From: Rebecca billardiae RCC1528
Lineage: Eukaryota; Protista; Haptophyta
Assembly (NCBI GenBank): GCA_965240325.2
Contig: OZ251245.1
Coordinates: forward strand, 1 to 64,000
DNA length: 64,000 bases
Direction of reading: 5' to 3'
Made by a program: the position numbers and the translations under genes. Below the pieces are notes generated by a model. It made no database searches. It was not told where the DNA came from and saw nothing but the letters and a program-made list of their open reading frames with translations. Shown here piece by piece: positions 106 to 64,000 of the stretch (position 1 is the first letter of the stretch; every line of letters begins with the position of its first letter).

Positions 106-362
106 TAACCCTAACCCTAACCCTAACCCTAACCCTAACCCTAACCCTAACCCTAACCCTAACCCTAACCCTAACCCTAACCCTAACCCTAACCCTAACC
201 CCTAACCTAACCCTAACCCTAACCCTAACCCTAACCCTAACCCTAACCCTAACCCTAACCCTAACCCTAACCCCTAACCCTAACCTAACCCTAACCCTAA
301 CCCTAACCCTAACCCTAACCCTAACCCTAACCCTAACCCTAACCCTAACCCTAACCCTAACC

Positions 363-403
<41 letters not shown>

Positions 404-660
404 CCCTAACCCCTAACCCCCTAACCCTAACCCCTAACCCTAACCCTAACCCTAACCTAACCCTAACCCTAACCCTAACCCTAACCCTAACCCTAACCCT
501 AACCCTAACCCTAACCCTAACCCTAACCCTAACCCTAACCCTAACCCTAACCCTAACCCTAACCCTAACCCTAACCCTAACCCTAACCCTAACCCTAACC
601 CTAACCCTAACCCTAACCCTAACCCTAACCCTAACCCTAACCCTAACCCTAACCCTAACC

Positions 661-701
<41 letters not shown>

Positions 702-920
702 CCCTAACCCTAACCCTAACCCTAACCCTAACCCTAACCCTAACCCTAACCCTAACCCTAACCCTAACCCTAACCCTAACCCTAACCCTAACCCCTAACC
801 CTAACCCTAACCCTAACCCTAACCCTAACCCTAACCCTACCCCTAACCCTACCCCTAACCCTAACCCTAACCCTAACCCTAACCCTAACCCTAACCCTAA
901 CCCTAACCTAACCCTAACCC
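106..920 (-). repeat. Telomere, (CCCTAA)n/(TTAGGG)n, ~135 units; left chromosome end
   Basis: Near-perfect CCCTAA tandem array at the start of the window. Confidence 0.97.
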
Positions 921-1233
921 CGCAGGTAAGGGTTAGGGCGCAGGTAAGGGTTAGGGTTAGGGTGGTGGTTAGGGTCGCCAGTACTAAAATGAGAATTTCT
1001 CGAGATTGACCGAACTGATTTCAACGAGACTTGGGCTCTGCCATGGAAATGGGAAGGGCTAAGGGCCCTCCAATTTTGAGAGAATTTGGCCCGGTCAATC
1101 TCGAGAAAACATACTTCTAACCCAACTTGGGCTCTGCCATGGAAATGGGAAGGGCTAAGGGCCCTCCAATTTTGAGAGAATTTGGCTCGGTCAATCTCGA
1201 GAAAACATACTTCTAACCCTAACCCTAAACCTA
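921..1233. repeat. Subtelomeric palindromic cassette, copy 1 (variant TTAGGG repeats, inverted-repeat core, CCCTAA tail)
   Basis: CGCAGGTAAGGGTTAGGG units; 18-bp inverted repeat TTTCTCGAGATTGACCGA (996-1013) / TCGGTCAATCTCGAGAAA (1187-1204); internal ~97-bp tandem duplication; ends CTAACCCTAACCCTAAACCTA. Confidence 0.85.
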
Positions 1234-2596: not shown

Positions 2597-2858
2597 GAGG
2601 GTGAGGGTAAGGGTTAGGGCGCAGGTAAGGGTTAGGGCGCAGGTAAGGGTTAGGGCGCAGGTAAGGGTTAGGGCGCAGGTAAGGGTTAGGGTTAGGGTGG
2701 TGGTTAGGGTCGCCAGTACTAAAATGAGAATTTCTCGAGATTGACCGAACTGATTTCAACGAGACTTGGGCTCTGCCATGGAAATGGGAAGGGCTAAGGG
2801 CCCTCCAATTTTGAGAGAATTTGGCTCGGTCAATCTCGAGAAAACATACTTCTAACCT
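2597..2858. repeat. Subtelomeric palindromic cassette, copy 2
   Basis: Direct repeat of the cassette at 921-1233 (offset 1735) with four CGCAGGTAAGGGTTAGGG units; its TTCTAACC end is fused directly to the 197-bp satellite. Confidence 0.85.
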
Positions 2859-14800: not shown

Positions 14801-17800
14801 GTCGGCCAGCTTGTACTGCGAAAGTCGAGCCAATGTAGGGCTTCTGGCTGACGCTCCGCCCTGGTTCCAGCCCGTACGAGTCCTCTGGGGCATCACCGGC
14901 CAGCCACCGAGCTGACTCTAGCACCGACTCGCCGTCAGACGGCCACCGCTGCTGATCCGAGATCGCCGCTCGAGCCGGGTGCATGCAGTAGGGCCAGTCG
15001 GCCAGCTGATACTGCGAAAGTCGAGCCAATGTAGGGCTTCTGGCTGACGCTCCGCTCTGGTTCCAGCCCGTACGAGTCCTCTGGGGTATCACCGGCCAGC
15101 CACCGAGCTGACTCTAGCACCGACTCGCCGTCAGACGGTCACCGCTGCTGATCCGAGATCGCACGGCTAGAGCCGGGCGTATGCAGCAGGGCCAGTCGGC
15201 CAGCTGATACTGCGAAAGTCGAGCCAATGTAGGGCTTCTGGCTGACGCTCAGCCCTGGTTCCAGCCCGTACGAGTCCTCTGGGGCATCACCGGCCAGCCA
15301 CCGAGCTGACCCTCGCGCGAACTGGCCGTCAGACGGTCACCGCTGCTGATCCGAGATCGCAGCTCGAGCCGGGCGTATGCAGCAGGGCCAGTCGGCCAGC
15401 TGATACTGCGAAAGTCGAGCCAATGTAGGGCTTCTGGCTGACGCTCCGCCCTGGTTCCAGCCCGTACGAGTCCTCTGGGGCATCACCGGCCAGCCACCGA
15501 GCTGACTCTAGCACCGACTCGCCGTCAGACGGTCACCGCTGCTGATCCGAGATCGCACGGCTAGAGCCGGGCGTATGCAGCAGGGCCAGTCGGCCAGCTG
15601 ATACTGCGAAAGTCGAGCCAATGTAGGGCTTCTGGCTGACGCTCCGCCCTGGTTCCAGCCCGTACGAGTCCTCTGGGGCATCACCGGCCAGCCACCGAGC
15701 TGACTCTCGGGCAAACTGGCCGTCAGACGGTCACCGCTGCTGATCCGAGGTCGCCGCTCGAGCCGGGCGTATGCAGCAGGGCCAGTCGGCCAGCTGATAC
15801 TGCGAAAGTCGAGCCAATGTAGGGCTTCTGGCTGACGCTCCGCCCTGGTTCCAGCCCGTACAAGTCCTCTGTAGCATCACCGGCCAGCCACCGAGCTGAC
15901 TCTAGCACCGACTCGCCGTCAGACGGTCACCGCTGCTGATCCGAGATCGCACGGCTAGAGCCGGGCGTATGCAGCAGGGCCAGTCGGCCAGCTGATACTG
16001 CGAAAGTCGAGCCAATGTAGGGCTTCTGGCTGACGCTCCGCCCTGGTTCCAGCCCGTACGAGTCCTCTGGGGCATCACCAGCCAGCCACCGAGCTGACCC
16101 TCGCGCGAACTGGCCGTCAGACGGTCACCGCTGCTGATCCGAGATCGCAGCTCGAGCCGGGCGTATGCAGCAGGGCCAGTCGGCCAGCTGATACTGCGAA
16201 AGTCGAGCCAATGTAGGGCTTCTGGCTGACGCTCCGCCCTGGTTCCAGCCCGTACGAGTCCTCTGTAGCATCATCGGCCAGCCACCGAGCTGACTCTCGG
16301 GTAAACGACTGGCCGTCAGACGGTCACCGCTGCTGATCCGAGGTCGCAGATCGAGCCGGGCCGTACGTGCAGCAGGGCCAGTCGGCCAGCTGATACTGCG
16401 AAAGTCGAGCCAATGTAGGGCTTCTGGCTGACGCTCAGCCCTGGTTCCAGCCCGTACGAGTCCTCTGGGGCATCACCGGCCAGCCACCGAGCTGACCCTC
16501 GCGCGAACTGGCCGTCAGACGGTCACCGCTGCTGATCCGAGATCGCAGCTCGAGCCGGGCGTATGCAGCAGGGCCAGTCGGCCAGCTGATACTGCGAAAG
16601 TCGAGCCAATGTAGGGCTTCTGGCTGACGCTCCGCCCTGGTTCCAGCCCGTACGAGTCCTCTGGGGCATCACCGGCCAGCCACCGAGCTGACTCTAGCAC
16701 CGACTCGCCGTCAGACGGTCACCGCTGCTGATCCGAGATCGCACGGCTAGAGCCGGGCGTATGCAGCAGGGCCAGTCGGCCAGCTGATACTGCGAAAGTC
16801 GAGCCAATGTACGGCTTCTGGCTGACGCTCCGCCCTGGTTCCAGCCCGTACGAGTCCTCTGGGGCATCACCGGCCAGCCACCGAGCTGACTCTCGGGCAA
16901 ACTGGCCGTCAGACGGTCACCGCTGCTGATCCGAGGTCGCCGCTCGAGCCGGGCGTATGCAGCAGGGCCAGTCGGCCAGCTGATACTGCGAAAGTCGAGC
17001 CAATGTAGGGCTTCTGGCTGACGCTCCGCCCTGGTTCCAGCCCGTACGAGTCCTCCGTAGCATCACCGGCCAGCCACCGAGCTGACTCTAGCACCGACTC
17101 GCCGTCAGACGGTCACCGCTGCTGATCCGAGATCGCACGGCTAGAGCCGGGCGTATGCAGCAGGGCCAGTCGGCCAGCTGATACTGCGAAAGTCGAGCCA
17201 ATGTAGGGCTTCTGGCTGACGCTCCGCCCTGGTTCCAGCCCGTACGAGTCCTCTGGGGCATCACCAGCCAGCCACCGAGCTGACCCTCGCGCGAACTGGC
17301 CGTCAGACGGTCACCGCTGCTGATCCGAGATCGCAGCTCGAGCCGGGCGTATGCAGCAGGGCCAGTCGGCCAGCTGATACTGCGAAAGTCGAGCCAATGT
17401 AGGGCTTCTGGCTGACGCTCCGCCCTGGTTCCAGCCCGTACGAGTCCTCTGTAGCATCATCGGCCAGCCACCGAGCTGACTCTCGGGTAAACGACTGGCC
17501 GTCAGACGGTCACCGCTGCTGATCCGAGGTCGCAGATCGAGCCGGGCCGTACGTGCAGCACTGCCAGTGGGCCAGCTGATACTGCGAAAGTCGAGCCAAT
17601 GTAGGGCTTCTGGCTGACGATCCGCCCTGATTCCAGCCCGTACGAGTCCTCTGGGGCATCACCGGCCAGCCACCGAGCTGACCCTCGCGCGAACTGGCCG
17701 TCAGACGGTCACCGCTGCTGATCCGAGGTCGCCGCTCGAGCCGGGCGTATGCAGCAGGGCCAGTCGGCCAGCTGATACTGCGAAAGTCGAGCCAATGTAG

Positions 17801-18774
17801 GGCTTCTGGCTGACGCTCCGCCCTGGTTCCAGCCCGTACGAGTCCTCCGTAGCATCACCGGCCAGCCACCGAGCTGACTCTAGCACCGACTCGCCGTCAG
17901 ACGGTCACCGCTGCTGATCCGAGATCGCACGGCTAGAGCCGGGCGTATGCAGCAGGGCCAGTCGGCCAGCTGATACTGCGAAAGTCGAGCCAATGTACGG
18001 CTTCTGGCTGACGCTCCGCCCTGGTTCCAGCCCGTACGAGTCCTCTGGGGCATCACCGGCCAGCCACCGAGCTGACCCTCGCGCGAACTGGCCGTCAGAC
18101 GGTCACCGCTGCTGATCCGAGATCGCAGCTCGAGCCGGGCGTATGCAGCAGGGCCAGTCGGCCAGCTGATATTGCGAAAGTCGAGCCAATGTAGGGCTTC
18201 TGGCTGACGCTCCGCCCTGGTTCCAGCCCGTACGAGTCCTCTGGGGCATCACCAGCCAGCCACCGAGCTGACTCTCGCGCGAACTGGCCGTCAGACGGTC
18301 ACCGCCGCTGATCCGAGATCGCAGCTCGAGCCGGGCGTATGCAGCAGGGCCAGTCGGCCAGCTGATACTGCGAAAGTCGAGCCAATGTAGGGCTTCTGGC
18401 TGACGATCCGCCCTGGTTCCAGCCCGTACGAGTCCTCTGGGGCATCACCAGCCAGCCACCGAGCTGACTCTCGCGCGAACTGGCCGTCAGACGGTCACCG
18501 CTGCTGATCCGAGATCGCAGCTCGAGCCGGGCTGTATGCAGCAGGGCCAGTCGGCCAGCTGATACTGCGAAAGTCGAGCCAATGTAGGGCTTCTGGCTGA
18601 CGCTCCGCCCTGGTTCCAGCCCGTACGAGTCCTCTGGGGCATCACCTGCCAGCCACCGAGCTGACTCTCGCGCGAACTGGCCGTCAGACGGTCACCGCCG
18701 CTGATCCGAGATCGCAGCTCGAGCCGGGCCGTACGTGCAGCACTGCCAGTTGGCCAGCTGATACTGCGAAAGTC
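2859..18774. repeat. Subtelomeric satellite A, ~196-200-bp monomers, ~81 copies, with higher-order duplication
   Basis: Monomer GCCGTCAGACGGTCACCGCTGCTGATCCGAG...GATACTGCGAAAGTCGAGCCAATGTAGGG...CCACCGAGCTGAC repeats continuously; rare variants recur at a 7691-bp offset. Confidence 0.97.
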
Positions 18775-29547: not shown

Positions 29548-29864
29548 GCCGGGGCGGCCCGGCTCGACGGTTAGCCGACAAGGCGACTGGCAGGACGACA
29601 TTACAGTCGGCATATACGACTAGCGTACGACTGTCTTGCAGATCTGAACGTGTACAGTCGTAGTGCCGTACTTGCGCATGTTAATATAGAATGTACGACA
29701 GAAAGCTAGTGTGTCAGCACGGTGTACGCACGGAACCCACGCGCGCAGCTGCTCAGCTCAATGGCACTGTGCGCATCCAGATGCTCAATCGTCACACTCT
29801 CGATGAGTGCCGCCCCCCTACAATGCCATCGTCGCGGATTGGGGCGCATCACGCACGCGCAGCG

Positions 29865-32800
29865 CGAGCTCGAGCGCCGCGCGGCCGAGTGAGACTCGGC
29901 GCGGCGGGAGCGCGCGCGTCTGAACGCGGGCGTTCAAAAGACACGGCGCGAGACCGGCACCGTCCGCCGCCGCGAGGCGCTGCTGCGCGTGCAGCAGCGC
30001 GGCGCGCGCCGCTCGGCCGCACTCGGCTGCCACTCGGCTGCACTCGGCAGCAGACGTGGCCGCCGCGCGCCGCGCGCCGAGCTCGAGCGCCGCGCGGCCG
30101 AGTGAGACTCGGCGCGGCGGGAGCGCGCGCGTCTGAACGCGGGCGTTCAAAAGACACGGCGCGAGACCGGCACCGTCCGCCGCCGCGAGGCGCTGCTGCG
30201 CGTGCAGCAGCGCGGCGCGCGCCGCTCGGCCGCACTCGGCTGCCACTCGGCTGCACTCGGCAGCAGACGTGGCCGCCGCGCGCCGCGCGCCGAGCTCGAG
30301 CGCCGCGCGGCCGAGTGAGACTCGGCGCGGCGGGAGCGCGCGCGTCTGAACGCGGGCGTTCAAAGGACACAGCGCGAGACCGGCGCCGTCCGCCGCCGCG
30401 AGGCGCTGCTGCGCGTGCAGCAGCGCGGCGCGCAACTCGGCCGCACTCGGCTGCCACTCGGCTGCACTCGGCAGCAGCTGCGGCGCGCCGCGCGCCGCGC
30501 GCCGAGCTCGAGCGCCGCGCGGCCGAGTGAGACTCGGCGCGGCGGGAGCGCGCGCACCTGAACGCGGGCGTTCAAAAGACACAGCGCGAGACCGGCACCG
30601 TCCGCCGCCGCGAGGCGCTGCTGCGCGTGCAGCAGCGCGCGCCGCTCGGCTGCACCCGCTCGGCTGCCACTCGGCTGCACTCGGCAGCAGCTGCGGCGCG
30701 CCACGCGCCGCGCGCCGAGCTCGAGCGCCGAGCGGCCGAGTGAGACTCGGCGCGGCGGGAGCGCGCGCGTCTGAACGCGGGCGTTCAAAAGACACGGCGC
30801 GAGACCGGCGCCGTCCGCCGCCGCGAGGCGCTGCTGCGCGTGCAGCAGCGCGCGCCGCTCGGCTGCACCCGCTCGGCTGCCACTCGGCTGCACTCGGCAG
30901 CAGCTGCGGCGCGCCGCGCGCCGCGCGCCGAGCTCGAGCGCCGCGCGGCCGAGTGAGACTCGGCGCGGCGGGAGCGCGCGCACCTGAACGCGGGCGTTCA
31001 AAAGACACAGCGCGAGACCGGCACCGTCCGCCGCCGCGAGGCGCTGCTGCGCGTGCAGCAGCGCGCGCCGCTCGGCTGCACCCGCTCGGCTGCCACTCGG
31101 CTGCACTCGGCAGCAGCTGCGGCGCGCCACGCGCCGCGCGCCGAGCTCGAGCGCCGCGCGGCCGAGTGAGACTCGGCGCGGCGGGAGCGCGCGCGTCTGA
31201 ACGCGGGCGTTCAAAAGACACAGCGCGAGACCGGCACCGTCCGCCGCCGCGAGGCGCTGCTGCGCGTGCAGCAGCGCGCGCCGCTCGGCTGCACCCGCTC
31301 GGCTGCCACTCGGCTGCACTCGGCAGCAGCTGCGGCGCGCCGCGCGCCGCGCGCCGAGCTCGAGCGCCGCGCGGCCGAGTGAGACTCCGCGCGGCGGGAG
31401 CGCGCGCGTCTGAACGCGGGCGTTCAAAAGACACAGCGCGAGACCGGCACCGTCCGCCGCCGCGAGGCGCTGCTGCGCGTGCAGCAGCGCGCGCCGCTCG
31501 GCTGCACCCGCTCGGCTGCCACTCGGCTGCACTCGGCAGCACGCGCCGCGCGCCGCGCGCCGAGCTCGAGCGCCGCGCGGCCGAGTGAGACTCGGCGCGG
31601 CGGGAGCGCGCGCACCTGAACGCGGGCGCTCAAAAGACACAGCGCGAGACCGGCACCGTCCGCCGCCGCGAGGCGCTGCTGCGCGTGCAGCAGCGCGGCG
31701 CGCGCCGCTCGGCCGCACTCGGCTGCACTCGGCAGCAGACGTGGCCGCCGCGCGCCGCGCGCCGAGCTCGAGCGCCGAGCGGCCGAGTGAGACTCGGCGC
31801 GGCGGGAGCGCGCGCACCTGGAGGCGGGCGTTCAAAAGACACAGCGCGAGACCGGCGCCGTCCGCCGCCGCGAGGCGCTGCTGCGCGTGCAGCAGCGCGC
31901 GCCGCTCGGCTGCACCCGCTCGGCTGCCACTCGGCTGCACTCGGCAGCACGCGCCGCGCGCCGCGCGCCGAGCTCGAGCGCCGCGCGGCCGAGTGAGACT
32001 CGGCGCGGCGGGAGCGCGCGCACCTGAACGCGGGCGCTCAAAAGACACAGCGCGAGACCGGCACCGTCCGCCGCCGCGAGGCGCTGCTGCGCGTGCAGCA
32101 GCGCGGCGCGCGCCGCTCGGCCGCACTCGGCTGCACTCGGCAGCAGACGTGGCCGCCGCGCGCCGCGCGCCGAGCTCGAGCGCCGCGCGGCCGAGTGAGA
32201 CTCCGCGCGGTGGGAGCGCGCGCGTCTGAACGCGGGCGTTCAAAAGACACAGCGCGAGACCGGCACCGTCCGCCGCCGCGAGGCGCTGCTGCGCGTGCAG
32301 CAGCGCGCGCCGCTCGGCTGCACCCGCTCGGCTGCCACTCGGCTGCACTCGGCAGCACGCGCCGCGCGCCGCGCGCCGAGCTCGAGCGCCGCGCGGCCGA
32401 GTGAGACTCGGCGCGGCGGGAGCGCGCGCGTCTGAACGCGGGCGTTCAAAAGACACAGCGCGAGACCGGCACCGTCCGCCGCCGCGAGGCGCTGCTGCGC
32501 GTGCAGCAGCGCGCGCCGCTCGGCTGCACCCGCTCGGCTGCCACTCGGCTGCACTCGGCAGCACGCGCCGCGCGCCGCGCGCCGAGCTCGAGCGCCGCGC
32601 GGCCGAGTGAGACTCGGCGCGGCGGGAGCGCGCGCACCTGAACGCGGGCGCTCAAAAGACACAGCGCGAGACCGGCACCGTCCGCCGCTGCGAGGCGCTG
32701 CTGCGCGTGCAGCAGCGCGGCGCGCGCCGCTCGGCCGCACTCGGCTGCACTCGGCAGCAGACGTGGCCGCCGCGCGCCGCGCGCCGAGCTCGAGCGCCGA

Positions 32801-35800
32801 GCGGCCGAGTGAGACTCGGCGCGGCGGGAGCGCGCGCACCTGGAGGCGGGCGTTCAAAAGACACAGCGCGAGACCGGCGCCGTCCGCCGCCGCGAGGCGC
32901 TGCTGCGCGTGCAGCAGCGCGCGCCGCTCGGCTGCACCCGCTCGGCTGCCACTCGGCTGCACTCGGCAGCACGCGCCGCGCGCCACGCGCCGCGCGCCGA
33001 GCTCGAGCGCCGCGCGGCCGAGTGAGACTCGGCGCGGCGGGAGCGCGCGCACCTGAACGCGGGCGCTCAAAAGACACAGCGCGAGGCCGGCACCGTCCGC
33101 CGCCGCGAGGCGCTGCTGCGCGTGCAGCAGCGCGCGCCGCTCGGCTGCACCCGCTCGGCTGCCACTCGGCTGCACTCGGCAGCAGCTGCGGCGCGCCACG
33201 CGCCGCGCGCCGAGCTCGAGCGCGGAGCGGCCGAGTGAGACTCGGCGCGGCGGGAGCGCGCGCACCTGGAGGCGGGCGTTCAAAAGACACAGCGCGAGAT
33301 TCGCGCCGTCCGCCGCCGCGAGGCGCTGCTGCGCGTGCAGCAGCGCGCGCCGCTCGGCTGCACCCGCTCGGCTGCCACTCGGCTGCACTCGGCAGCAGAC
33401 GTGGCCGCCGCGCGCCGCGCGCCGAGCTCGAGCGCCGAGCGGCCGAGTGAGACTCGGCGCGGCGGGAGCGCGCGCGACTGAACGCGGGCGTTCAAAAGAC
33501 ACGGCGCGAGACCGGCGCCGTCCGCCGCCGCGAGGCGCTGCTGCGCGTGCAGCAGCGCGGCGCGCGCCGCTCGGCCGCACTCGGCTGCCACTCGGCTGCA
33601 CTCGGCAGCAGCTGCGGCGCGCCACGCGCCACGCGCCGAGCTCGAGCGCCGCGCGGCCGAGTGAGACTCGGCGCGGCGGGAGCGCGCGCACCTGAACGCG
33701 GGCGTTCAAAAGACACAGCGCGAGACCGGCAACGTCCGCCGCCGCGAGGCGCTGCTGCGCGTGCAGCAGCGCGCGCCGCTCGGCTGCACCCGCTCGGCTG
33801 CCACTCGGCTGCACTCGGCAGCAGCTGCGGCGCGCCACGCGCCGCGCGCCGAGCTCGAGCGCCGCGCGGCCGAGTGAGACTCCGCGCGGCGGGGGCGCGC
33901 GCACCTGGAGGCGGGCGTTCAAAAGACACAGCGCGAGACCGGCACCGTCCGTCGCCGCGAGGCGCTGCTGCGCGTGCAGCAGCGCGGCGCGCGCCGCTCG
34001 GCCGCACTCGGCTGCAACTCGGCTGCACTCGGCAGCAGCTGCGGCGCGCCACGCGCCGCGCGCCGAGCTCGAGCGCCGAGCGGCCGAGTGAGACTCGGCG
34101 CGGCGGGAGCGCGCGCACCTGGAGGCGGGCGTTCAAAAGACACAGCGCGAGACCGGCGCCGTCCGCCGCCGCGAGGCGCTGCTGCGCGTGCAGCAGCGCG
34201 CGCCGCTCGGCTGCACCCGCTCGGCTGCCACTCGGCTGCACTCGGCAGCAGCTGCGGCGCGCCACGCGCCGCGCGCCGAGCTCGAGCGCCGCGCGGCCGA
34301 GTGAGACTCGGCGCGGCGGGAGCGCGCGCACCTGAACGCGGGCGTTCAAAAGACACAGCGCGAGACCGGCACCGTCCGCCGCCGCGAGGCGCTGCTGCGC
34401 GTGCAGCAGCGCGCGCCGCTCGGCTGCACCCGCTCGGCTGCCACTCGGCTGCACTCGGCAGCAGCTGCGGCGCGCCACGCGCCGCGCGCCGAGCTCGAGC
34501 GCCGCGCGGCCGAGTGAGACTCGGCGCGGCGGGAGCGCGCGCACCTGAACGCGGGCGTTCAAAAGACACAGCGCGAGACCGGCACCGTCCGCCGCCGCGA
34601 GGCGCTGCTGCGCGTGCAGCAGCGCGCGCCGCTCGGCTGCACCCGCTCGGCTGCCACTCGGCTGCACTCGGCAGCAGACGTGGCCGCCGCGCGCCGCGCG
34701 CCGAGCTCGAGCGCCGCGCGGCCGAGTGAGACTCGGCGCGGCGGGAGCGCGCGCACCTGAACGCGGGCGCTCAAAAGACACAGCGCGAGACCGGCACCGT
34801 CCGCCGCCGCGAGGCGCTGCTGCGCGTGCAGCAGCGCGCGCCGCTCGGCTGCACCCGCTCGGCTGCCACTCGGCTGCACTCGGCAGCAGCTGCGGCGCGC
34901 CGCGCGCCGCGCGCCGAGCTCGAGCGCCGCGCGGCCGAGTGAGACTCGGCGCGGCGGGAGCGCGCGCACCTGGAGGCGGGCGTTCAAAAGACACAGCGCG
35001 AGACCGGCACCGTCCGCCGCCGCGAGGCGCTGCTGCGCGTGCAGCAGCGCGGCGCGCGCCGCTCGGCCGCACTCGGCTGCCACTCGGCTGCACTCGGCAG
35101 CAGCTGCGGCGCGCCGCGCGCCGCGCGCCGAGCTCGAGCGCCGCGCGGCCGAGTGAGACTCGGCGCGGCGGGAGCGCGCGCACCTGAACGCGGGCGCTCA
35201 AAAGACACAGCGCGAGACCGGCACCGTCCGCCGCCGCGAGGCGCTGCTGCGCGTGCAGGCCGCTCGGCTGCACCCGCTCGGCTGCCACTCGGCTGCACTC
35301 GGCAGCAGCTGCGGCGCGCCGCGCGCCGCGCGCCGAGCTCGAGCGCCGCGCGGCCGAGTGAGACTCGGCGCGGCGGGAGCGCGCGCACCTGAACGCGGGC
35401 GTTCAAAAGACACAGCGCGAGACCGGCACCGTCCGCCGCCGCGAGGCGCTGCTGCGCGTGCAGCAGCGCGCGCCGCTCGGCTGCACCCGCTCGGCTGCCA
35501 CTCGGCTGCACTCGGCAGCAGCTGCGGCGCGCCGCGCGCCGCGCGCCGAGCTCGAGCGCCGCGCGGCCGAGTGAGACTCGGCGCGGCGGGAGCGCGCGCG
35601 TCTGAACGCGGGCGTTCAAAAGACACAGCGCGAGACCGGCACCGTCCGCCGCCGCGAGGCGCTGCTGCGCGTGCAGCAGCGCGCGCCGCTCGGCTGCACC
35701 CGCTCGGCTGCCACTCGGCTGCACTCGGCAGCAGCTGCGGCGCGCCGCGCGCCGCGCGCCGAGCTCGAGCGCCGCGCGGCCGAGTGAGACTCCGCGCGGC

Positions 35801-38800
35801 GGGAGCGCGCGCGTCTGAACGCGGGCGTTCAAAAGACACAGCGCGAGACCGGCACCGTCCGCCGCCGCGAGGCGCTGCTGCGCGTGCAGGCCGCTCGGCT
35901 GCACCCGCTCGGCTGCCACTCGGCTGCACTCGGCAGCAGCTGCGGCCGCCGCGCGCCGCGCGCCGAGCTCGAGCGCCGCGCGGCCGAGTGAGACTCGGCG
36001 CGGCGGGAGCGCGCGCGTCTGAACGCGGGCGTTCAAAAGACACAGCGCGAGACCGGCACCGTCCGCCGCCGCGAGGCGCTGCTGCGCGTGCAGCAGCGCG
36101 CGCCGCTCGGCTGCACCCGCTCGGCTGCCACTCGGCTGCACTCGGCAGCAGCTGCGGCCGCCGCGCGCCGCGCGCCGAGCTCGAGCGCCGCGCGGCCGAG
36201 TGAGACTCGGCGCGGCGGGAGCGCGCGCACCTGAACGCGGGCGCTCAAAAGACACAGCGCGAGACCGGCACCGTCCGCCGCCGCGAGGCGCTGCTGCGCG
36301 TGCAGGCCGCTCGGCTGCACCCGCTCGGCTGCCACTCGGCTGCACTCGGCAGCAGCTGCGGCGCGCCGCGCGCCGCGCGCCGAGCTCGAGCGCCGCGCGG
36401 CCGAGTGAGACTCGGCGCGGCGGGAGCGCGCGCACCTGAACGCGGGCGCTCAAAAGACACAGCGCGAGACCGGCACCGTCCGCCGCCGCGAGGCGCTGCT
36501 GCGCGTGCAGCAGCGCGCGCCGCTCGGCTGCACCCGCTCGGCTGCCACTCGGCTGCACTCGGCAGCAGCTGCGGCGCGCCACGCGCCGCGCGCCGAGCTC
36601 GAGCGCCGAGCAGCCGAGTGAGACTCGGCGCGGCGGGAGCGCGCGCACCTGAACGCGGGCGTTCAAAAGACACAGCGCGAGACCGGCACCGTCCGCCGCC
36701 GCGAGGCGCTGCTGCGCGTGCAGCAGCGCGCGCCGCTCGGCTGCACCCGCTCGGCTGCCACTCGGCTGCACTCGGCAGCAGCTGCGGCGCGCCGCGCGCC
36801 GCGCGCCGAGCTCGAGCGCCGCGCGGCCGAGTGAGACTCCGCGCGGCGGGAGCGCGCGCACCTGAACGCGGGCGTTCAAAAGACACGGCGCGAGACCGGC
36901 ACCGTCCGCCGCCGCGAGGCGCTGCTGCGCGTGCAGCAGCGCGCGCCGCTCGGCTGCACCCGCTCGGCTGCCACTCGGCTGCACTCGGCAGCAGCTGCGG
37001 CGCGCCGCGCGCCGCGCGCCGAGCTCGAGCGCCGCGCGGCCGAGTGAGACTCCGCGCGGCGGGAGCGCGCGCACCTGAACGCGGGCGTTCAAAAGACACG
37101 GCGCGAGACCGGCACCGTCCGCCGCCGCGAGGCGCTGCTGCGCGTGCAGCAGCGCGCGCCGCTCGGCTGCACCCGCTCGGCTGCCACTCGGCTGCACTCG
37201 GCAGCAGCTGCGGCGCGCCGCGCGCCGCGCGCCGAGCTCGAGCGCCGCGCGGCCGAGTGAGACTCGGCGCGGCGGGAGCGCGCGCACCTGAACGCGGGCG
37301 CTCAAAAGACACAGCGCGAGACCGGCACCGTCCGCCGCCGCGAGGCGCTGCTGCGCGTGCAGCAGCGCGCGCCGCTCGGCTGCACCCGCTCGGCTGCCAC
37401 TCGGCTGCACTCGGCAGCAGCTGCGGCGCGCCACGCGCCGCGCGCCGAGCTCGAGCGCCGCGCGGCCGAGTGAGACTCGGCGCGGCGGGAGCGCGCGCGT
37501 CTGAACGCGGGCGCTCAAAAGACACAGCGCGAGACCGGCACCGTCCGCCGCCGCGAGGCGCTGCTGCGCGTGCAGCAGCGCGCGCCGCTCGGCTGCACCC
37601 GCTCGGCTGCCACTCGGCTGCACTCGGCAGCAGCTGCGGCGCGCCGCGCGCCGCGCGCCGAGCTCGAGCGCCGAGCGGCCGAGTGAGACTCCGCGCGGCG
37701 GGAGCGCGCGCGTCTGAACGCGGGCGTTCAAAAGACACAGCGCGAGACCGGCACCGTCCGCCGCCGCGAGGCGCTGCTGCGCGTGCAGGCCGCTCGGCTG
37801 CACCCGCTCGGCTGCCACTCGGCTGCACTCGGCAGCAGCTGCGGCCGCCGCGCGCCGCGCGCCGAGCTCGAGCGCCGCGCGGCCGAGTGAGACTCGGCGC
37901 GGCGGGAGCGCGCGCGACTGAACGCGGGCGTTCAAAAGACACGGCGCGAGACCGGCGCCGTCCGCCGCCGCGAGGCGCTGCTGCGCGTGCAGCAGCGCGG
38001 CGCGCGCCGCTCGGCCGCACTCGGCTGCCACTCGGCTGCACTCGGCAGCAGCTGCGGCGCGCCGCGCGCCGCGCGCCGAGCTCGAGCGCCGCGCGGCCGA
38101 GTGAGACTCGGCGCGGCGGGAGCGCGCGCACCTGGAGGCGGGCGTTCAAAAGACACAGCGCGAGACCGGCACCGTCCGCCGCCGCGAGGCGCTGCTGCGC
38201 GTGCAGCAGCGCGGCGCGCGCCGCTCGGCCGCACTCGGCTGCCACTCGGCTGCACTCGGCAGCAGCTGCGGCGCGCCGCGCGCCGCGCGCCGAGCTCGAG
38301 CGCCGCGCGGCCGAGTGAGACTCGGCGCGGCGGGAGCGCGCGCACCTGAACGCGGGCGTTCAAAAGACACAGCGCGAGACCGGCACCGTCCGCCGCCGCG
38401 AGGCGCTGCTGCGCGTGCAGCAGCGCGCGCCGCTCGGCTGCACCCGCTCGGCTGCCACTCGGCTGCACTCGGCAGCAGCTGCGGCGCGCCACGCGCCGCG
38501 CGCCGAGCTCGAGCGCCGCGCGGCCGAGTGAGACTCGGCGCGGCGGGAGCGCGCGCACCTGAACGCGGGCGCTCAAAAGACACAGCGCGAGACCGGCGCC
38601 GTCCGCCGCCGCGAGGCGCTGCTGCGCGTGCAGCAGCGCGGCGCGCGCAGCTCGGCCGCACTCGGCTGCCACTCGGCTGCACTCGGCAGCAGCTGCGGCG
38701 CGCCGCGCGCCGCGCGCCGAGCTCGAGCGCCGCTCGGCCGAGTGAGACTCGGCGCGGCGGGAGCGCGCGCACCTGCAGGCGGGCGTTCAAAAGACACGGC

Positions 38801-38885
38801 GCGAGACCGGCACAGTCCGCCGCCGCGAGGCGCCGCTGCGCGTGCAGCAGCGCGCGCCGCTCGGCTGCACCCGCTCGGCTGCCCT
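29865..38885. repeat. Satellite B, GC-rich hairpin-containing ~202-214-bp monomers (mostly 213), ~43 copies
   Basis: The landmark CAAAAGACAC occurs about 43 times from ~29935 to ~38790. Confidence 0.97.
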
Positions 38886-40029
38886 CGGCGGCAGGGCGCG
38901 CGCCGGGCGCGCGCACACGCCCAGTCTGAGCGCGGCGCGGCCGCGGCAGCCTCGGCGCGGCAGCGGCACGCGCGGTTGGACGAGCGGGTCCGATTCCAGC
39001 GCTGCGAGACGCACGTCAGCGGCCGCCCTGATGCTGTGCTCGAGGCGGCGCGTGCACGCTCGGCGAGCCGACGCACGCCATCTCGCCCCGCGCCGACCGG
39101 CGGCGGGCGCAGCCGCGACCGCACTGGGCGACACGGCTGCGCGTGCGGCCGCGCGCGCAGCCGCGCGCGACCGCACAGCCGCAGGCGCGCACCCTCCGCC
39201 GCCCTCCGCCGCCGCGGCCCGCCGGAGCGAGCACAGCGGCGGCGCGCGGCCGCGGCCCGCAGCCCGTGGCCCCTGCTCGGCAGCTGGGCGCGGCAGCGGG
39301 CGCGCCCCACCCCGGCCTCGCGCGAGAGCAGCGGCGATGCGTTGGGGTGCGCGGCGGTGCGTTGCGCCGCGGAGTGGGCGCGTTGGCCGCTCCGGGCCCG
39401 CACCGGGCGCACGCACCGGGCAAGCACTCGAACGCACTCGAGCCGGCGCGAGCTTCGACGCGCGGCCGCAGCCGGCACATCACAGGGGGCCAGTGCGCGC
39501 GAGCAGCGCTGCATTCAGCAGTTGCCGCTCACCGGGGTCAGGTTGGACGAGGTGGAAGATGGGGGGCCGGGGCGGGGCCAGCTTCAAACGGTGCGAGGCG
39601 CTCGGACGGCAGTGGGGTGCCATGCGCGCGTCGCCCCCGGCGCGCGGCCGCGCCGCCGTCCGACGCCCAACGCAGCCTCGGAGAGCCGCCACGCCGCGCA
39701 GCGGCATGCGCGTCGCAGAGCGTGCGTGCAGTCGCGGGCAAGAGGACAGTCCAAGCGCGCAGCACGCACCCCGCGCGAAACCGCAGTGCTCAGGCTGCTG
39801 CTCGTCGGCGCGAGCCTCGCCTGCCAGGCCGCTGCCGGCCCGAGCCGCGAAGCCCGGCGGTCGCGAGCCGCTACGCGGCGCGCAGCCACGCCTGCGCCGA
39901 GGCAGTGAGCGCGCACGCGCGCGTAGCGGACGAGGAGCACGCATACGCGCGTGCGCGCGTGGCTGACCCGCCGGCACCTCCCGCCGTTGCGCCCGTCTGC
40001 AAAGCGAGACCCACCCCGCGGAGAACTCG

Positions 40030-57840: not shown

Positions 57841-59736
57841 GTGGGGTTATTGGCCGTACAATAACTGATTGTCTAAGAGGACGACAAGAACGCCGGGCGC
57901 CAGCGCCGCTCATCAGCCACCACGCATCGCGTCTCGTCGACGGCGAGCGGCATGCCCACCGCATCTGCTGCCGCTCGCCAAGGCATGACGGGACACCGGT
58001 AAATCCCACTGAGTAGGAACACACGCAGCCGCCTCGGCATCGACATGCCAGGCGGCGTGCCCACCTTCGGCCAGCAGCTGTGGCGAAAGACGTTGCCAAG
58101 ACATGCTGCTTCCACTTGCCGAGGTGCTTCGCCTTGACACAGGGGTAACTTGCGGCGCACGTGCGCGATGGCGAGCCGCGGCGTGAAGGGCGGCAGCGGC
58201 GGGCCCGCTGCAAGCTGCAAGCACTTTGTGCTGGCTGCGTTTAGCCCGTGCCATGTGACGACCAAGACCGGTTGATAGAAAGCTAGTCTGCCATCGAAAC
58301 CAGCTCTACACGCTCCGCCGCCACTACCTTGTCGAGCTTGAGATGCTTCCGTTGCGTGTGCTCGCATGCAGCCTGCCGCCTGCATTTGAACGTGATCGCG
58401 GCAGGTCGGCTGGCCGGATTGTCACGCCTCCTCGGCGTAGACTACGACACGATGCGTGCCACACGCACCCATGACACGCCGCAAGGCGTATGCACGCGTC
58501 TTCGCGCATCTGGCAGGCTGCAGTCTTGGCCAAATTGATGAGAACAAGCCTGCATCAAGCGCTCGCGGCGCAGGCGCGAGCGCGCGGAGAGTTCTGGGAT
58601 GACCCATGGTGCCTTGCTCGGGGACGCAACTCCTCCTCAACGGCTGCGAGCGGCGACACCGGAGCTAGATCGCTGCACTCAGCACTCCTCGCTGAGTGCA
58701 GCGTGACCCTCGGAGTCGTGCGTCTCGGCTTCCCGCCGGAGCCTTTGCGTCCCCGAGCGGGGCGTGACACCGATTCCCACTGGCGGGCACGGGTTTGTCG
58801 CCGTGACATACAGGGGTCTCAACAATTAAACGTCACATTCTGACTGAGCTGCACGCCACTGCTCACCCTGCCCCCCTGGGCTGATCCAGGCGGCCCCCAC
58901 GGCCCGTGCACCGGACGGTTTCGACCCAGCGCGTCAGCCCCAGCGCGCGTGGGCTGGAGTTGGGCACACCAGCAGGTCACACGGCTGCAGGCGTACAGCC
59001 TGTCGCAGCTGGCCAGATCCTGCCGCAGGCTTGTCGTCACTGGTCGCGGGCCGTGTGCCCACACAGGCCAGGCCTAAATTGTGCTTGGCAGTGGATCTGG
59101 TACCCCCTAGGGTGGGCTGCATGCCACCTGGGGGGGAGCTCATGGGATGCAGCTGCTGTGGCACAGTGCCCAATCCCGCACCCCCACCTGCGCAAGGACC
59201 TGTCGGGTCAGCTCCCCTGCACTGGGAGGCCAGCAGCAGCACCCGCTGACACACCCCGAGGGTGGCCAGCCACCCGACTTGAGGGGGCTGGAGTGGGGCT
59301 GGTGCAGCCAAGAGCTCTGCAGCCCAGCTGCTGGTGGCTGGCCTGCATGGATTTTCAAGCTGACCACCCACTGCTGCCTGCCGCACCCCTCGCTGCACCC
59401 ACCTGGGCTGCTGCACATGCGCACTCTGGATGGCACCACAGCCCAGCATGGAGAGCTGGCCAAGCAGCCACCCACTCGTCAGAATGGCCAGGGAGTGGGC
59501 TGTGCTAGACCACAGCATCTAGCCAGGCAATCAAGTGCTCACATGCCTGTCCAGTGGCACAAACATGCAGAGATACACACAGCAACGACTTCTTTTTTAA
59601 AGCGGCCGTTAGCGTGTCCATCGGCCGGATTATTTTACGGAAAATTACTATGCGCTGCGCGCGCGCGCCCAGCGGGCGGCGCGCGCGCGCGACTAGTCCC
59701 CCCTGCATGCCCTAACCGTCAGCTGCCTGATTCCCG

Positions 59737-62700
59737 CTACCCAGCCCCGCTGCCGTCGCGCGCGACATCCGCGCCGTCGCTCACCGTCGCCGAGGCCGAG
59801 CGCGCCGCCGCCCTCAATTTGCTCTTGAGTGCCGACAAGTCCTCCTCCGGAAGCCCAGCCTCCTCGCGCACGAGCTTGCGCGCCGCGATGTACTCGTCGA
59901 CCAGGTCGTGCGCGCCGGCCTTCGCCTTGCGCTGCCATTCGCGCTGCCGCTTGCCCTCCTTCTTCAGCCAGAGCCGCCGCACCTTGTCGCCGAACTCCTC
60001 CTCCGCCCACGTCGCAAGCGACACGCGGCGCAGGAGCTGCGCGGCCGTCGAGATGTGCGGCTGCACCGTCGACTTCTTCCCCTCGGCATACTCGCGGACG
60101 AACGAGTCGAGCGACTTGCGCGCGTTCACGAGCGGCATCGCCCGCTTGGTCACCTGCACGAAGTGCTCCTGCACCTGCTCGTCCGCGAGCTGCACGAGGT
60201 GGCCCCACCGCCTGATCAGCAGAGGCAAGACGAACCGCGCGATCGTCTTGTACTGCGAGGTGACCGGCTTGAGGACGAACAGGTCGAGCGCCTCGACCCA
60301 CGCCGTCGCGGCTGCCTCAACCTCGTCCGCACGCTTCGCGCGGCCATCGTCATCGTCCGTGTAGCCGCGCGAGGAGACGAGGTCGTGCAGCTGCCACGTG
60401 AGCATGAGCAGGCGGCAGAAGAGTGCCATGCGCGGCATGTCCGCGATCTCGGCCTTCAACTGCGCCTCGTCGTCAAAGCCGATCTCGTCCATCATCTCGC
60501 GCTCCTCCTCGTCCTGCATGTCCGAGATGCGCGCGTCCTCGTCGCCGCTGTCCGCCGCGCCCGCGCTGCTCGCGCCGTCGAGATCCGCGTCGATCTTCCA
60601 CACGACCTGCACCAACGCCCAGAAGACCGCGTGCGTGCGCAGCAGCGAGATGCCGTCGCCGCGGAGGTCGGGCACGCCGATCTCGTTGGTGCGCGTGCGC
60701 CGCTTGGGCACTCGCACAGGCACGCCCGCGTTCTTGAACAGGACGATCAGGTCGTACTTGGTGAGCGGCGCGTCGCGGCCGTACAGCTCGTCCACCTCCC
60801 TCCACAGCGCCGACAGCACCGGCTTGAAAGTGTCGTGCTTGAAGTGCATGATGCCGGGGAAGTAGTTGACGTGCTCGAGCTCCAGCTGCGGTAGCAGCCA
60901 CTGGTTCTCGTGCAGCTTCTGGTCGACGATGCGCTCGGCGTCCTTCGAGTCGTCGGCGAGAAGGCGGCGGCGCTTGGTCATCTCGGCGTCGCACTCGCCC
61001 TGGTCGGCAGGCGTGACCTTGCACGCAGGGCACGTCACGCCCGGGTCCGCGTGGCACAGCGCGCGCGCGCGCTTGTACGTGCGCAGCCGCCACTGAGGCG
61101 AGCCGCCGTCCGCGCCCGCCTCCTTGACAGCCCACACGTTGAAGCGGAGCGGCGAGACGTTGTGCGAGCCCTGGCCGGCGAGGCTGGCAAGGTTGACATA
61201 ATCGCCGGTGTACGTGATGATGGCCTTCTGCTCCTCCGCGTAGTCGGCCGCCTCGCCGCCGCCGCCAAAACCGCCGCCGGCCGCGCCGCCCGCCGCGCCG
61301 GCAGCGCCGGCCGCGCCGGCCGCGCCGGCCGCGCCGGCCGCGCCGCCGGCCGCGGCGGCCGCGGCGGCCGCGGCGGCCGCGGCGGCCGCGCCGCCGGCCG
61401 TGCCCGCGCTCGGGTTGCCAGCCGCGCTGCTCGCCGCGCCGCCGGCCGCGCCACCGGCCGCGCGGACGCCAGCGCCGGCGGTGCCGCCAGCCACGCCGCT
61501 GCCGCTGCCGCTGCCGCCCGCGCCGCCCGCGCCGCCCGCGCCGCCGCCAGCGCCCGCGCCCGCGTTACCAGCCGCGCCGCCGGCAGCGCCGCCGGCCGCG
61601 CGGACGCCAGCGCCGGCGGTGCCGCCAGCCACGCCGCTGCCGCCCGCGCCGCCCGCGCCGCCCGTGCCGCCGGCCGTGCCGCCGGCCGTGCCGCCGGCCG
61701 CGCCGCCGGCCGCGCCGCGGGCCTCGCCGCGGCCCGCGCCGCCGGCCGCGCCGGCTGTGACGGCCGCGGCCGCGCCGCCGGCCGCGCCGGCCACACGTGC
61801 GGTGGCGGCAGCAGGCGGCGTCGGTCGCGGCGGAAGCAGGCCGCTCCGGATCACGTCATTGATCGCGTCGGCGTGCGCACTCCATAACTCGGACATGTCC
61901 GAGTCCGGCCGCTCCGAGATGGCGATCGCCTCTGACGACGCGAGCGCGCCGTAGTTGACGCCCCAGCCGTTGCGCACGATGGCGATCGTGGCCGTGCGCG
62001 AGTGAGCCGTGTTGCCCGCGTCCGCCGAGAGGAGGAGGACGTGCGGATGCCCGCGCGGGCGCGCGGACTTGCCGTTGCGCTCCGAGCGATCCAGCACGGC
62101 GTGCACGGCCTGCGCCCACGGCCGCGCCGCCGACTCGCTGCCGATCATGAGCACGCCCGCGCCCGCGTGCTCGCGATCGCGCTGCGCGACCTCTCGAGAG
62201 CCAGCCGCCGGCGGCGGGATCGGGTGGCGGATCGGCTCGCGGCCGAAGCCGCCGCGGAAGACGGTGCGAGCCGAGTGCTCGCCCGTCACCGGGTGGATCT
62301 CCTTCCCCACCCACTCGCGCCACGTGTCGAACTGCGCGTCCGTGACGTTCTTCGAGACGAGGTAGCCGGCGACGTCGTGGTGCGTCTGATGAGATTGAAT
62401 CTCGCGCACAACGCCCACTGCGCCGCGGCGCTGCTGGAGGTAGGCGTGCCTCGCCCACGGCTTGCGCGAGCCGTCGTCTGCGCCCTCGAGCATCTCGTGC
62501 AGCACGAGGTCCATCACGTCGTCGGGCGTGCCACGCAGGATGTGCTCGATATGGTCCGCCTCCCCCCGCCTGCGCTTGCGGCACGCGTTGCTCGAGACCG
62601 AGAGAGATGGGCGCTGAGCGCGCTGCCGATGAGCGCCGTCCAGCCCGTTCAGCTCGGCGAGGTGCTCGAACTTGCCGGCGGCTCGGTCGGCGCGCTTGCG

Positions 62701-64000
62701 CGCGGCGTCCTTGTCGCGCTTGAGCTCGACAAGCTGCGACTGCTGCTCGTCGCAGAGCGACTGGGCGTGCGCGCACTGCTGCTCGAGCAGCTGCTGCGCG
62801 TGCAGCGCAGCCGCGAGCTCGTGCTCGACGCCGCTCAGCGCGTCAGCGGCGATGTGCTCGGTCGCGGTGAGGCGGCGCTCCAACTCGAGGGCCCGATCGC
62901 GCTGCGCGTCGGCGGCGCGCTGCGCAGCTGCGGCCCGCGCGTTCGCCTCTTCGAGATCGCGCCGAAGCTTCGCCTGCGCCTGCTCCGCCTCGGCGTCGTG
63001 GCGGGTGCGCGCATCCGCGCTGTGCCCGGCGCGGTACCCGGCGAGCACAGCGCGCCTCTCCGCGGCAGCAGCGGCGGCGCGCGCGGCGGCGATCCGGTCG
63101 AGGGCCTCGCGCTCGATGTTCTCGCACTCGAGCTTGACGGCGGCGATCACCACGTCGAGAACCGGCTCGAGATCGACGGCGGCCGAGTTGACGATGTCCT
63201 CGCGCTGCCGCACCGCGTCGTCGCGCTCGCGCTCGAGCTCGCCGTTGAAGTGCTCGAGCTCGGTCACACGTGTGCGCAGCGAGGTGAGCTCGAGCTCGGA
63301 AGGGACGCTGCGCGTGCTGTGCGAGCGCCGCAACTGCTGCTCGAGCTCGGCCACGTGCTACAGCTCGGCCATGCGCCTTCGACCCCGTGCTGTCTGCTCG
63401 TCCGCCTCTGCCTCGGGCGTCGGCGCCACGCTGCCAGCCGAGCGCGTGAGAGGCCGCTGGCGGGTGGGCGCGGCCGAGAGCAGCACGGCAGGCGGCGGCG
63501 ACATGAAGGCGGGCGAGGCGACGGCAGGTGACCTCGGCGGCAGCAGCTCTTCCGCCGACCCACCGACGAACGGCTGCGCCGCCGCGCCAGCGAGGAGGAG
63601 TGGCGGCGCGGGCTGGCGGGAGGCGCTGCGCGTGACCGCGGGCGACGGCGCAGCGGCAGCAGGAAAGCTCAAGGCGGAGGAGGCGTTGGTAGTGGCGGGC
63701 GAGAAGACGAGGTGGTCGGCGTGAGCGGGAAGAGACGAGAAGCGGGCAGCGACGACGGCGGGAGACAAATCGGCGGCGGCGGCGGCGGCTGATGCCGCCG
63801 CCTCGCCGCCATCAGCTCGAAGGAGAGCGAGCGCGCGCGCGGTCGGTGGACGGGCGGCATCATGCGGCGAGGACAGCGGCTGCGGCTGCGGCCGCGGCCG
63901 CGGCCGCGGCCGCGGCTGCGGCGGCTGCACGAGCGGCGGAGGCAGGTGCGGAGGCGCCGACGGCAGCTGCGGCGGTGGCGGAAGCGACGGCAGCGGCGGC
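59737..64000 (-). mobile_element. RAG1/Transib-like DDE transposase gene; the element probably continues past the window edge; in-frame TAG at 63358-63360
   Basis: Ordered RAG1/Transib-like motifs: SLSVSSNACRKRRR, NVTDAQFDTWR, LLLSADAG (D, 62020-22), AISERPDS, YTGDY (D, 61201-03), PGIMH, LRGDG, VTSQY...LIRRWGHLVQLADEQVQEH (E, 60166-68). Confidence 0.78.

Follow-up and report, generated by a model that had tools for sequence, protein, structure and literature searches.

A probable new CMCT transposon lineage with a predicted RAG1/Transib-like fold near a chromosome end of the haptophyte Rebecca billardiae

Transposase gene and element copy at the locus

The DNA analysed here (the window) is a stretch of 64,000 nucleotides, positions 1 to 64,000 of contig OZ251245.1 in assembly GCA_965240325.2 of the haptophyte Rebecca billardiae RCC1528, and it carries at its far end, on the minus strand, a transposase gene recognised from the listing of open reading frames (ORFs), its translation and its homologues (Table 1). 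The analysis makes it likely that the window holds most of one slightly damaged copy of a cut-and-paste DNA transposon, which belongs to a new lineage of the CACTA-Mirage-Chapaev-Transib (CMCT) clade nearest to Transib and RAG1 and is not a strict Transib. The placement nearest to Transib and RAG1 follows from structure and protein language-model features, and strict Transib membership fails for want of sequence similarity, of the H(3-4)H motif and, in the relatives examined, of a 5-bp duplication.

The ORF runs for 1205 stop-free codons from its given start, a length that at 74% GC has a chance of about 1e-8. At this base composition the window has long ORFs on every strand, as would be expected if the gene were an accident of very GC-rich DNA, open by chance and with coincidental motifs; we give this explanation practically no weight, and it was ruled out by the figure of about 1e-8 per start, by 34 homologues (the closest, partial, at E = 1e-91) and by a confident predicted fold. 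Upstream of the ORF the same frame stays open to the window end but for one TAG (translation of 59737-63999), and the first-pass annotation, which had described both the ORF and this extension, was borne out by the translation and the 34 homologues as far as the open frame is concerned. The extension probably does not belong to the transposase, in that an ATG four codons upstream of the TAG would put the start just before it. The peptide encoded there, M-A-E-L-stop-H-V-A-E-L-E-Q-Q-L, aligns by eye with the start of the homologue P0001 (MEEIAYVRSLEQRL), and the first methionine within the listed ORF is residue 281. Given the alignment with the P0001 start, this ATG is probably the true start of the transposase, and the TAG, at codon 5, is most plausibly a nonsense codon. 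Around the nonsense codon, GCCGAGCT occurs twice, 18 nt apart, within 63352-63372 (ATG GCC GAG CTG TAG CAC GTG GCC GAG CTC GAG), and the stop may have arrived by a small duplication or insertion.

The Pro/Ala-rich stretch upstream of the ATG is probably non-coding or spacer sequence outside the transposase. The N-terminal 260 or so residues of the ORF are rich in Ala, Arg, Glu and Leu, and the N-terminal positions of the family profile match coiled-coil segments of PDB chains only; judged by composition and these matches, the long coiled coil that had been proposed before the DDE core is a reasonable prediction. Further along, a Gly/Ala-rich in-frame expansion with repeat periods of 9 and 12 nt at 61272-61792 (Tandem Repeats Finder) falls below 50 in the predicted local distance difference test (pLDDT) at model residues 189-368. 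Within the RNase H fold it occupies the loop that joins helix 1 to strand 4; at this place there is a short linker in close relatives and a Cys-rich one in those further removed. For an intron here there is no evidence either way; repeats with periods of 9 and 12 leave the frame intact.

Table 1. Features of the transposon copy and of its surroundings, with residue numbers of the listed ORF
Feature	Position	Strand	Basis or remark
Transposase ORF, 1205 aa, stop codon included	59737..63354	minus	ORF listing, translation, homologues
Probable start ATG (63370-63372) and in-frame TAG at codon 5 (63358-63360)	63358..63372	minus	By-eye alignment with P0001 start
N-terminal helical charged region, residues 1 to about 260, probable coiled coil	62575..63354	minus	Composition; family profile
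DDBD and pre-RNase H aligned segment, residues about 358-435	62050..62283	minus	Conserved G358...G435; VIA-align
First half of RNase H-like fold (strands 1-3, helix 1)	61786..62049	minus	DSSP order
D445	62020-62022	minus	Kept in 13/13 sequences
D484	61903-61905	minus	Kept in 13/14 sequences
Gly/Ala-rich in-frame repeat expansion, residues about 524-703 (180 residues)	61246..61785	minus	Predicted disordered
D718, second catalytic Asp (TGDY)	61201..61203	minus	Kept in 15/16 sequences; directly after strand 4
Candidate zinc module H768, C775-P-A-C778, H815	60910..61053	minus	H768 kept in 15/17, C775 in 16/20, C778 in 18/19, H815 in 16/18 sequences
MHFKH motif (H837, H840)	60835..60849	minus	Start of long helix
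SQY...P.LI..WG......EQVQE block with E1059 and E1063, no His pair	60166..60258	minus	E1063 likely catalytic Glu
3' untranslated and subterminal region	59578..59736	minus	More AT-rich than the ORF
Element terminus, 3' end relative to the transposase gene	59578..59610	minus	Plus strand reads CACAGCAACGAC
Upstream part of element, Pro/Ala-rich open frame, cut by window end	63373..64000	minus	Translation; exact contig 63307-63892
Telomere array (TAACCC)n	106-920		Window starts at chromosome end
Satellite, 196/394-nt units, 80 copies	2857-18774		
Satellite, 213-nt units, 43 copies, 79% GC	29856-38893		

A family of homologues with a conserved motif order

An exhaustive phmmer search of 1.8 billion representatives returned the 34 homologues, 15 of them at E <=1e-10; their sources are the genome of Pavlovales sp. 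CCMP2436, MMETSP transcriptomes, marine metagenomes of JGI and ENA, and Logan assemblies. Pavlovales sp. CCMP2436 is the source of the closest named relatives, which fits a very GC-rich alga of haptophyte type as host. The non-animal origin claimed for the sequence is correct; the surprise attached to it is not warranted, given that RAG1-like (RAG1L) and Transib transposons have already been recorded in protists, plants, fungi and bacteria, with an active RAGL element in Aureococcus (PMC9435367; PMC10462144). In the open-access literature we found no description of such a haptophyte lineage.

The motifs that had been listed for the window ORF are present and their order is kept across the family: SADAG (D445), ERPDSD (D484), TGDY (D718), H768-x6-C775-P-A-C778, LHEN (H815), MHFKH (H837, H840), RGDGISLLRT, SQYKTIARF...WG (1033-1051) and DEQVQE (E1059, E1063). 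The conserved columns, in ORF numbering, are S443-x-D445-A-G, D484, T716-G-D718, H768-x6-C775-P-x-C778, H815-x-N817, M836-H837-x2-H840, R906, S1033-x-Y1035, G1051, E1059-Q-x-Q-E1063 and K1070, so that the D, D and E said to be kept (D445, D718 and E1063) are conserved family-wide. The closest homologue, P0001 (331 aa, from a 2.4-kb NCBI contig, 68% identical over the matched part), runs in frame straight from the coiled coil into the C-terminal third of the transposase. It lacks both catalytic Asp residues and represents either an alternative product or an in-frame deletion derivative. Most members carry in the RNase H loop a Cys-rich linker, CC-x(10-12)-CxC followed by 4-6 more Cys (alignment columns about 1100-1290; P0004, P0011, P0014, P0019, P0027, P0033, P0035 and P0036), which may be an extra zinc module.

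Predicted fold and resemblance to RAG1

ORF residues 336-1205 were modelled with AlphaFold2 from an alignment of 38 sequences. The core model has a mean pLDDT of 72, a predicted template modelling (TM) score of 0.69 and 331 residues at pLDDT >=90; apart from the repeat insert and the termini, most blocks reach 80-98, and the repeat insert is the sole long disordered part. By DSSP the model has the order of an RNase H-like DDE domain: strand 1, which contains D445, leads to strands 2 and 3, a helix and the disordered insert; strand 4 is immediately followed by D718 and then by a large helical domain; and a C-terminal helix bears E1059 and E1063.

The comparison of a predicted structure with RAG1 and HzTransib that the first-pass annotation had suggested was made with Foldseek against the PDB and gave RAG1, HzTransib or amphioxus RAGL (BbRAGL) in 36 of the first 37 rows, with probabilities up to 1.00, TM scores up to 0.51 by target length and weak E-values (best 0.015). 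In VIA-align over 48,161 representative chains RAG1 (4wwx_E) matched at Z 18.2 over 415 residues with a root-mean-square deviation (rmsd) of 4.9, model residues 46..791 lying on RAG1 484..1004, and BbRAGL matched at Z 17.2 (419 residues, rmsd 4.7), ahead of HzTransib at Z 11.4 (336 residues, rmsd 8.3). DDE transposases other than these reached Z <=10.3, namely the P element transposase (Z 10.3, 307 residues, rmsd 5.5), ISCth4 (Z 8.3, 216 residues, rmsd 5.1), Hermes (Z 8.1, 293 residues, rmsd 6.9) and Tn5 (Z 6.6, 191 residues, rmsd 5.5). The alignments begin at model residue 22-46, which corresponds to RAG1 484-503, and the likeness to RAG1, RAG1-like (ProtoRAG) and Transib proteins thus takes in the predicted fold over RAG1 about 484-1004 (Z 17-18). 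When the C-terminal half was modelled alone, BbRAGL (Z 12.9), RAG1 (12.8) and HzTransib (9.1) again stood above unrelated helical proteins (<=7.5). In that model residues 8..360 aligned to RAG1 701..962, and therefore D718 (model residue 15) falls near RAG1 D708 and E1063 (model residue 360) at RAG1 E962. We take D445, D718 and E1063 to match the RAG1 catalytic positions D600, D708 and E962, from mouse RAG1 motifs and the alignment ranges. The family has several traits of RAG1 and Transib: its DDE core is of RNase H type, Asp, Asp, CxxC and Glu follow one another as they do there, a helical domain is inserted after the second Asp and before the Glu, and CAC opens the element ends. On this basis the core is predicted to have the RAG1/Transib architecture, made up of a segment like the dimerisation and DNA-binding domain (DDBD), a pre-RNase H part, the RNase H domain, ZnC2-like and ZnH2-like helical domains and a C-terminal domain.

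Protein language-model features point the same way, the nearest neighbours being RAG1 and Transib. For the C-terminal half of the window protein the nearest clusters were those of RAG1 ZnC2/ZnH2 at 0.85, a lead only. The core of P0035, which is without the repeat insert, was nearest to RAG1 and to arthropod and cnidarian RAG1_RNase_H clusters at 0.94-0.95, with 178-182 of 256 features shared, followed by a DUF1280 cluster at 0.93; no CACTA family was among the 30 nearest. A query with the 196-residue N-terminal core alone returned noise (phage portal, 0.83). The language-model result leans towards Transib/RAG1.

Putative zinc-site motifs

Common traits of the CMCT clade are C(2)C and H(3-4)H, termini of the CA..TG type and duplications of 2-5 bp, and the clade, RAG1 included, is defined by the motifs C(2)C and H(3-4)H that stand between second Asp and Glu (PMC12730594). 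In the family studied here the C(2)C motif is C775-P-A-C778, about 57 residues after D718, whereas in RAG1 the distance is about 19, and a new conserved His stands six residues before it. D718 and CPAC are separated in the model by two strands, the first of them FNVW, and a short helix, and the simpler reading is that CPxC is the RAG1-type CxxC, moved downstream by the insertion of about 35 residues (a hairpin and a helix).

The H(3-4)H motif has no counterpart: by column count of the family alignment no member has a conserved His before the catalytic Glu, where the block reads SQY.T....P.LI..WG in all members, and the His pair H937/H942 of RAG1 is absent. The sole conserved His pair, MH..H (H837 and H840), lies about 220 residues upstream of the Glu. 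The idea of a rebuilt zinc site consequently stands in one half, the loss of the His pair, which extends to all members, and falls in the other, the replacement of CxxC by SPLR, which lies just ahead of the FNVW strand, the conserved CPxC being read as a displaced CxxC. Conserved His residues able to complete a site are H768, H815, H837 and H840, and H768, C775, C778 and H815 form a candidate zinc module.

Element ends, sibling copies and complete relatives

Contigs from three runs of one sample were placed on 58001-64000 at 80% likeness. Exact contigs covered 60170-60884, 62119-62334, 62576-62845, 62934-63163 and 63307-63892, and sibling copies, another matter raised in the first reading, were found in the same sample. 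A contig of 666 nt represents a sibling about 92% identical to the window copy (52 substitutions, 8 gaps), and 59578 is the exact position at which its match sets in; ahead of this position two contigs run into unrelated loose ends, and a contig of the flank goes no further than 59565. Because the sibling match starts there, the loose ends lie before it and the flanking contig stops short of it, the element is seen to end at 59578 (CACAGCA). By hand count, codon positions 1, 2 and 3 take 8, 10 and 8 of the 26 substitutions listed for the coding tail, and in this poorly conserved tail the comparison of the window copy with its sibling shows no sign of purifying selection. One further contig of the sample joins 60211 to 61093, a deletion variant that skips 881 bp out of frame. 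Within the window tblastn revealed no second copy, and a repeat search of 40-64 kb was swamped by GC-rich low complexity.

Relatives that are complete measure 5.5-6.0 kb and have inverted ends of 14-33 bp starting CACAG or CACTG. The Pavlovales genome locus L001 (9471-14977, 5.5 kb) has the ends CACAGCCTAGA, reading CACAGCC at both ends, with a second shared block 21 nt in, and is flanked by GAT on either side. The related-locus search also found five metagenome loci, two of which are useful deletion derivatives. On one metagenome contig an element of 5,957 bp (L004, 444-6400) has perfect 33-bp inverted ends starting CACTGCTTTGCC, with flanks ...ATCA / ATCT..., and two marine-metagenome contigs carry internally deleted derivatives of this element with both ends, L006 (124-3586) between TA and TA and L007 (100-3553), at a different site, between CA and GC. 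The 33-bp repeats of L004, L006 and L007 start CACTGCTTT. The Pavlovales copies L002 and L005 were kept outside the comparison of ends on account of a diverged 5' end and N-masked stretches. The deletion derivatives keep the 33-bp inverted ends and differ in their flanks, which is evidence of past mobility in the family.

Several relatives have an additional part of about 250-300 residues, either an upstream ORF or an N-terminal domain: L004 has an upstream ORF of 296 codons (913-1803), with the transposase split into two calls, and comparable sequence forms P0036 1-270 and the N-termini of P0027 and P0033. A motif PFPHQVM / PFPHEVM is common, by eye, to the L004 upstream ORF and the N-terminal domain of the Pavlovales gene models. 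Neither the L004 ORF (913-1803) nor P0036 1-270 has a Pfam match, Kelch included. With the element cut by the window, no RAG2-like or Kelch gene was seen in the 640 bp that are visible on the upstream side or within 1.7 kb past the end, and the earlier statement that no such partner is visible is therefore right for the visible sequence and says little about the whole element, the upstream ORF of the relatives being without a Pfam match.

State of the window copy and its surroundings

The window copy retains all catalytic and most conserved residues. It is probably not autonomous, being either recently disabled or non-autonomous, because of the stop at codon 5 and the 180-residue repeat expansion within the RNase H domain. 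An ORF so long and almost intact might instead belong to a domesticated host gene, derived from a transposase and no longer mobile, an interpretation that also draws on the transcription of family relatives (MMETSP) and on Pavlovales gene models annotated as ordinary proteins. Against it stand the stop at codon 5, a sibling copy (about 92%) whose similarity starts sharply at the CACAG end, substitutions spread evenly over codon positions (8/10/8), the 881-bp deletion variant, the inverted ends of the relatives with deletion derivatives at different sites, and a subtelomeric, repeat-rich setting, and we regard domestication as very unlikely.

The surroundings of the transposon are subtelomeric and rich in repeats, with the GC content of the window at 65-82%. 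A (TA)n / TATATT tract lies at about 57800-57860, 1.7 kb past the element end. Contigs at 58201-58600 are about 3x as deep as in the adjoining flank, and indels occur in several of them; a further repeat family probably borders the transposon here.

Placement among RAG1, Transib and CMC transposases

The kinship with RAG1 and Transib asserted by the first-pass annotation was upheld by fold (VIA-align, Foldseek) and by language model, and found no support in Pfam or in PDB sequence profiles. A stricter version of that kinship would make the element a member of the Transib superfamily, sister of the RAG1-like lineage, with 5-bp duplications and a nick-and-hairpin reaction, and too diverged for profiles. 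The best solved-structure matches (RAG1, RAGL and Transib), the language-model neighbours, which are RAG1/Transib and not CACTA, the resemblance of the CACAG or CACTG ends to the heptamer of the recombination signal sequence, and the presence of Transib and RAG1L in protists, plants, fungi and bacteria (PMC9435367) all speak for it. The H(3-4)H pair found across the CMCT clade is missing, however, HzTransib at Z 11.4 lies well under RAG1 at 18.2, no Pfam RAG1_* model matched any of the 34 members at E up to 10, and a 5-bp target duplication was seen in none of the four complete relatives, a small sample in which metagenome contigs may be chimeric. In our judgement strict Transib membership is improbable, and in place of the 5-bp duplication that the first-pass annotation had proposed to look for, the complete relatives show one of 2-3 bp or none detectable. 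Further features set the family apart from RAG1 and Transib, namely the lack of detectable sequence similarity to their profiles, the long N-terminal coiled coil, the absence of any RAG2-like/Kelch partner from what was seen, and the duplications of 2-3 bp or undetectable ones in place of 5 bp.

The alternative affinity is with the CMC transposons (CACTA/EnSpm, Mirage, Chapaev) and with the newer lineages Plavaka, ESTA and Lanisha, in which, likewise, the DDE core has its C(2)C after the second Asp and before the Glu. CMC elements and the family also have in common termini of the form CA..TG (CAC..GTG), target duplications that are short where seen, an element size of 5.5-6 kb, a possible second ORF, and shape matches to the Transposase_21 and DUF1280 clusters of the ESM Atlas. 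In contrast, the family has no match to Pfam Transposase_21 or any other CMC model, lacks the CMCT-wide H(3-4)H, and has RAG1/Transib and not CACTA as language-model neighbours. The CMCT clade includes lineages known as RAG1-like by HHpred only, such as ESTA with TA duplications (PMC12730594). The RAG1-related AanRAGL transposon of the pelagophyte Aureococcus anophagefferens (PMC9435367) likewise lives in a GC-rich unicellular marine alga, but it is a RAG1L by sequence and has a RAG2L gene, asymmetric ends and 5-bp duplications, none of which was seen for the window element.

Several results weigh against the placement of the window copy as a transposon of a new CMCT lineage nearest to Transib and RAG1. 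The ESM-Atlas shape search returned unnamed eukaryotic, DUF1280 and Transposase_21 (CACTA) clusters at TM 0.42-0.49, the Transposase_21 cluster at 0.47 over 499 residues (with the C-terminal half alone, the same search gave one unnamed rotifer cluster only and was non-discriminating). To our knowledge no structure of any CMC transposase has been solved, and for that reason structure alone cannot separate Transib from CMC/CACTA-like enzymes. D445, D718 and E1063 should converge as a DDE triad in the model, a prediction that draws on topology and alignment ranges only. Pfam gave no match for the ORF, for its halves or for the 34 members one by one, E values up to 10 bringing up no model of RAG1 or CACTA, and neither phmmer nor profiles of the whole core, the C-terminal core and the N-terminal core found a RAG1 or Transib chain among PDB sequences, the matches being coiled-coil and linker noise. 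The target duplications, to be compared with 2-4 bp for CMC elements, are inconsistent, with 3 bp at L001, 2 bp at L006 and none at L004 or L007, on metagenome contigs that may be chimeric in the last three cases, and 2-3 bp is a provisional length. The other terminus of the window copy and any upstream ORF are beyond 64000, with the target duplication also outside the window, and as to transcription no RNA run contained the window copy.

A transposon of a new CMCT lineage nearest to Transib and RAG1 remains the preferred account. A bolder form of it would see the family as a deep, undescribed sister lineage of Transib and RAG1 together, with the whole RAG1 core, a local His-Cys-Cys(-His) site and no Cys2-His2 zinc bridge, and duplications of 2-3 bp; we put this forward tentatively, as possible and rather doubtful.

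Proposed mechanism and significance

In the mechanism that we propose, the transposase would bind the CAC-ended inverted repeats as a multimer, the coiled coil being the probable means of multimerisation, and nick at CAC. The element would then be released, probably via a hairpin on the flanking DNA as in RAG and Transib, and reinserted by a short staggered cut of 2-3 bp. Zinc would be held by H768, C775 and C778 with a fourth ligand (H815, H837 or H840), and this site would replace the RAG1 Cys2-His2 site that bridges to the helix before the catalytic Glu.

RAG1 descended from Transib-like transposases, and the lineage described here widens the known sequence space of the RAG1-like fold and adds an algal branch to a known group of transposons. 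Pipelines that rely on Pfam will miss this family in pavlovophyte genomes and marine metagenomes. Its members are natural variants, without the His pair and with a relocated CxxC, in which to ask about the role of the zinc site and about what sets the length of the target duplication. Should the family prove to be a deep sister lineage of Transib and RAG1, it would be a natural intermediate between CACTA-type and Transib-type transposases and would offer a way to test the origin of the zinc bridge and of the target-cut stagger on the path towards the V(D)J recombinase.

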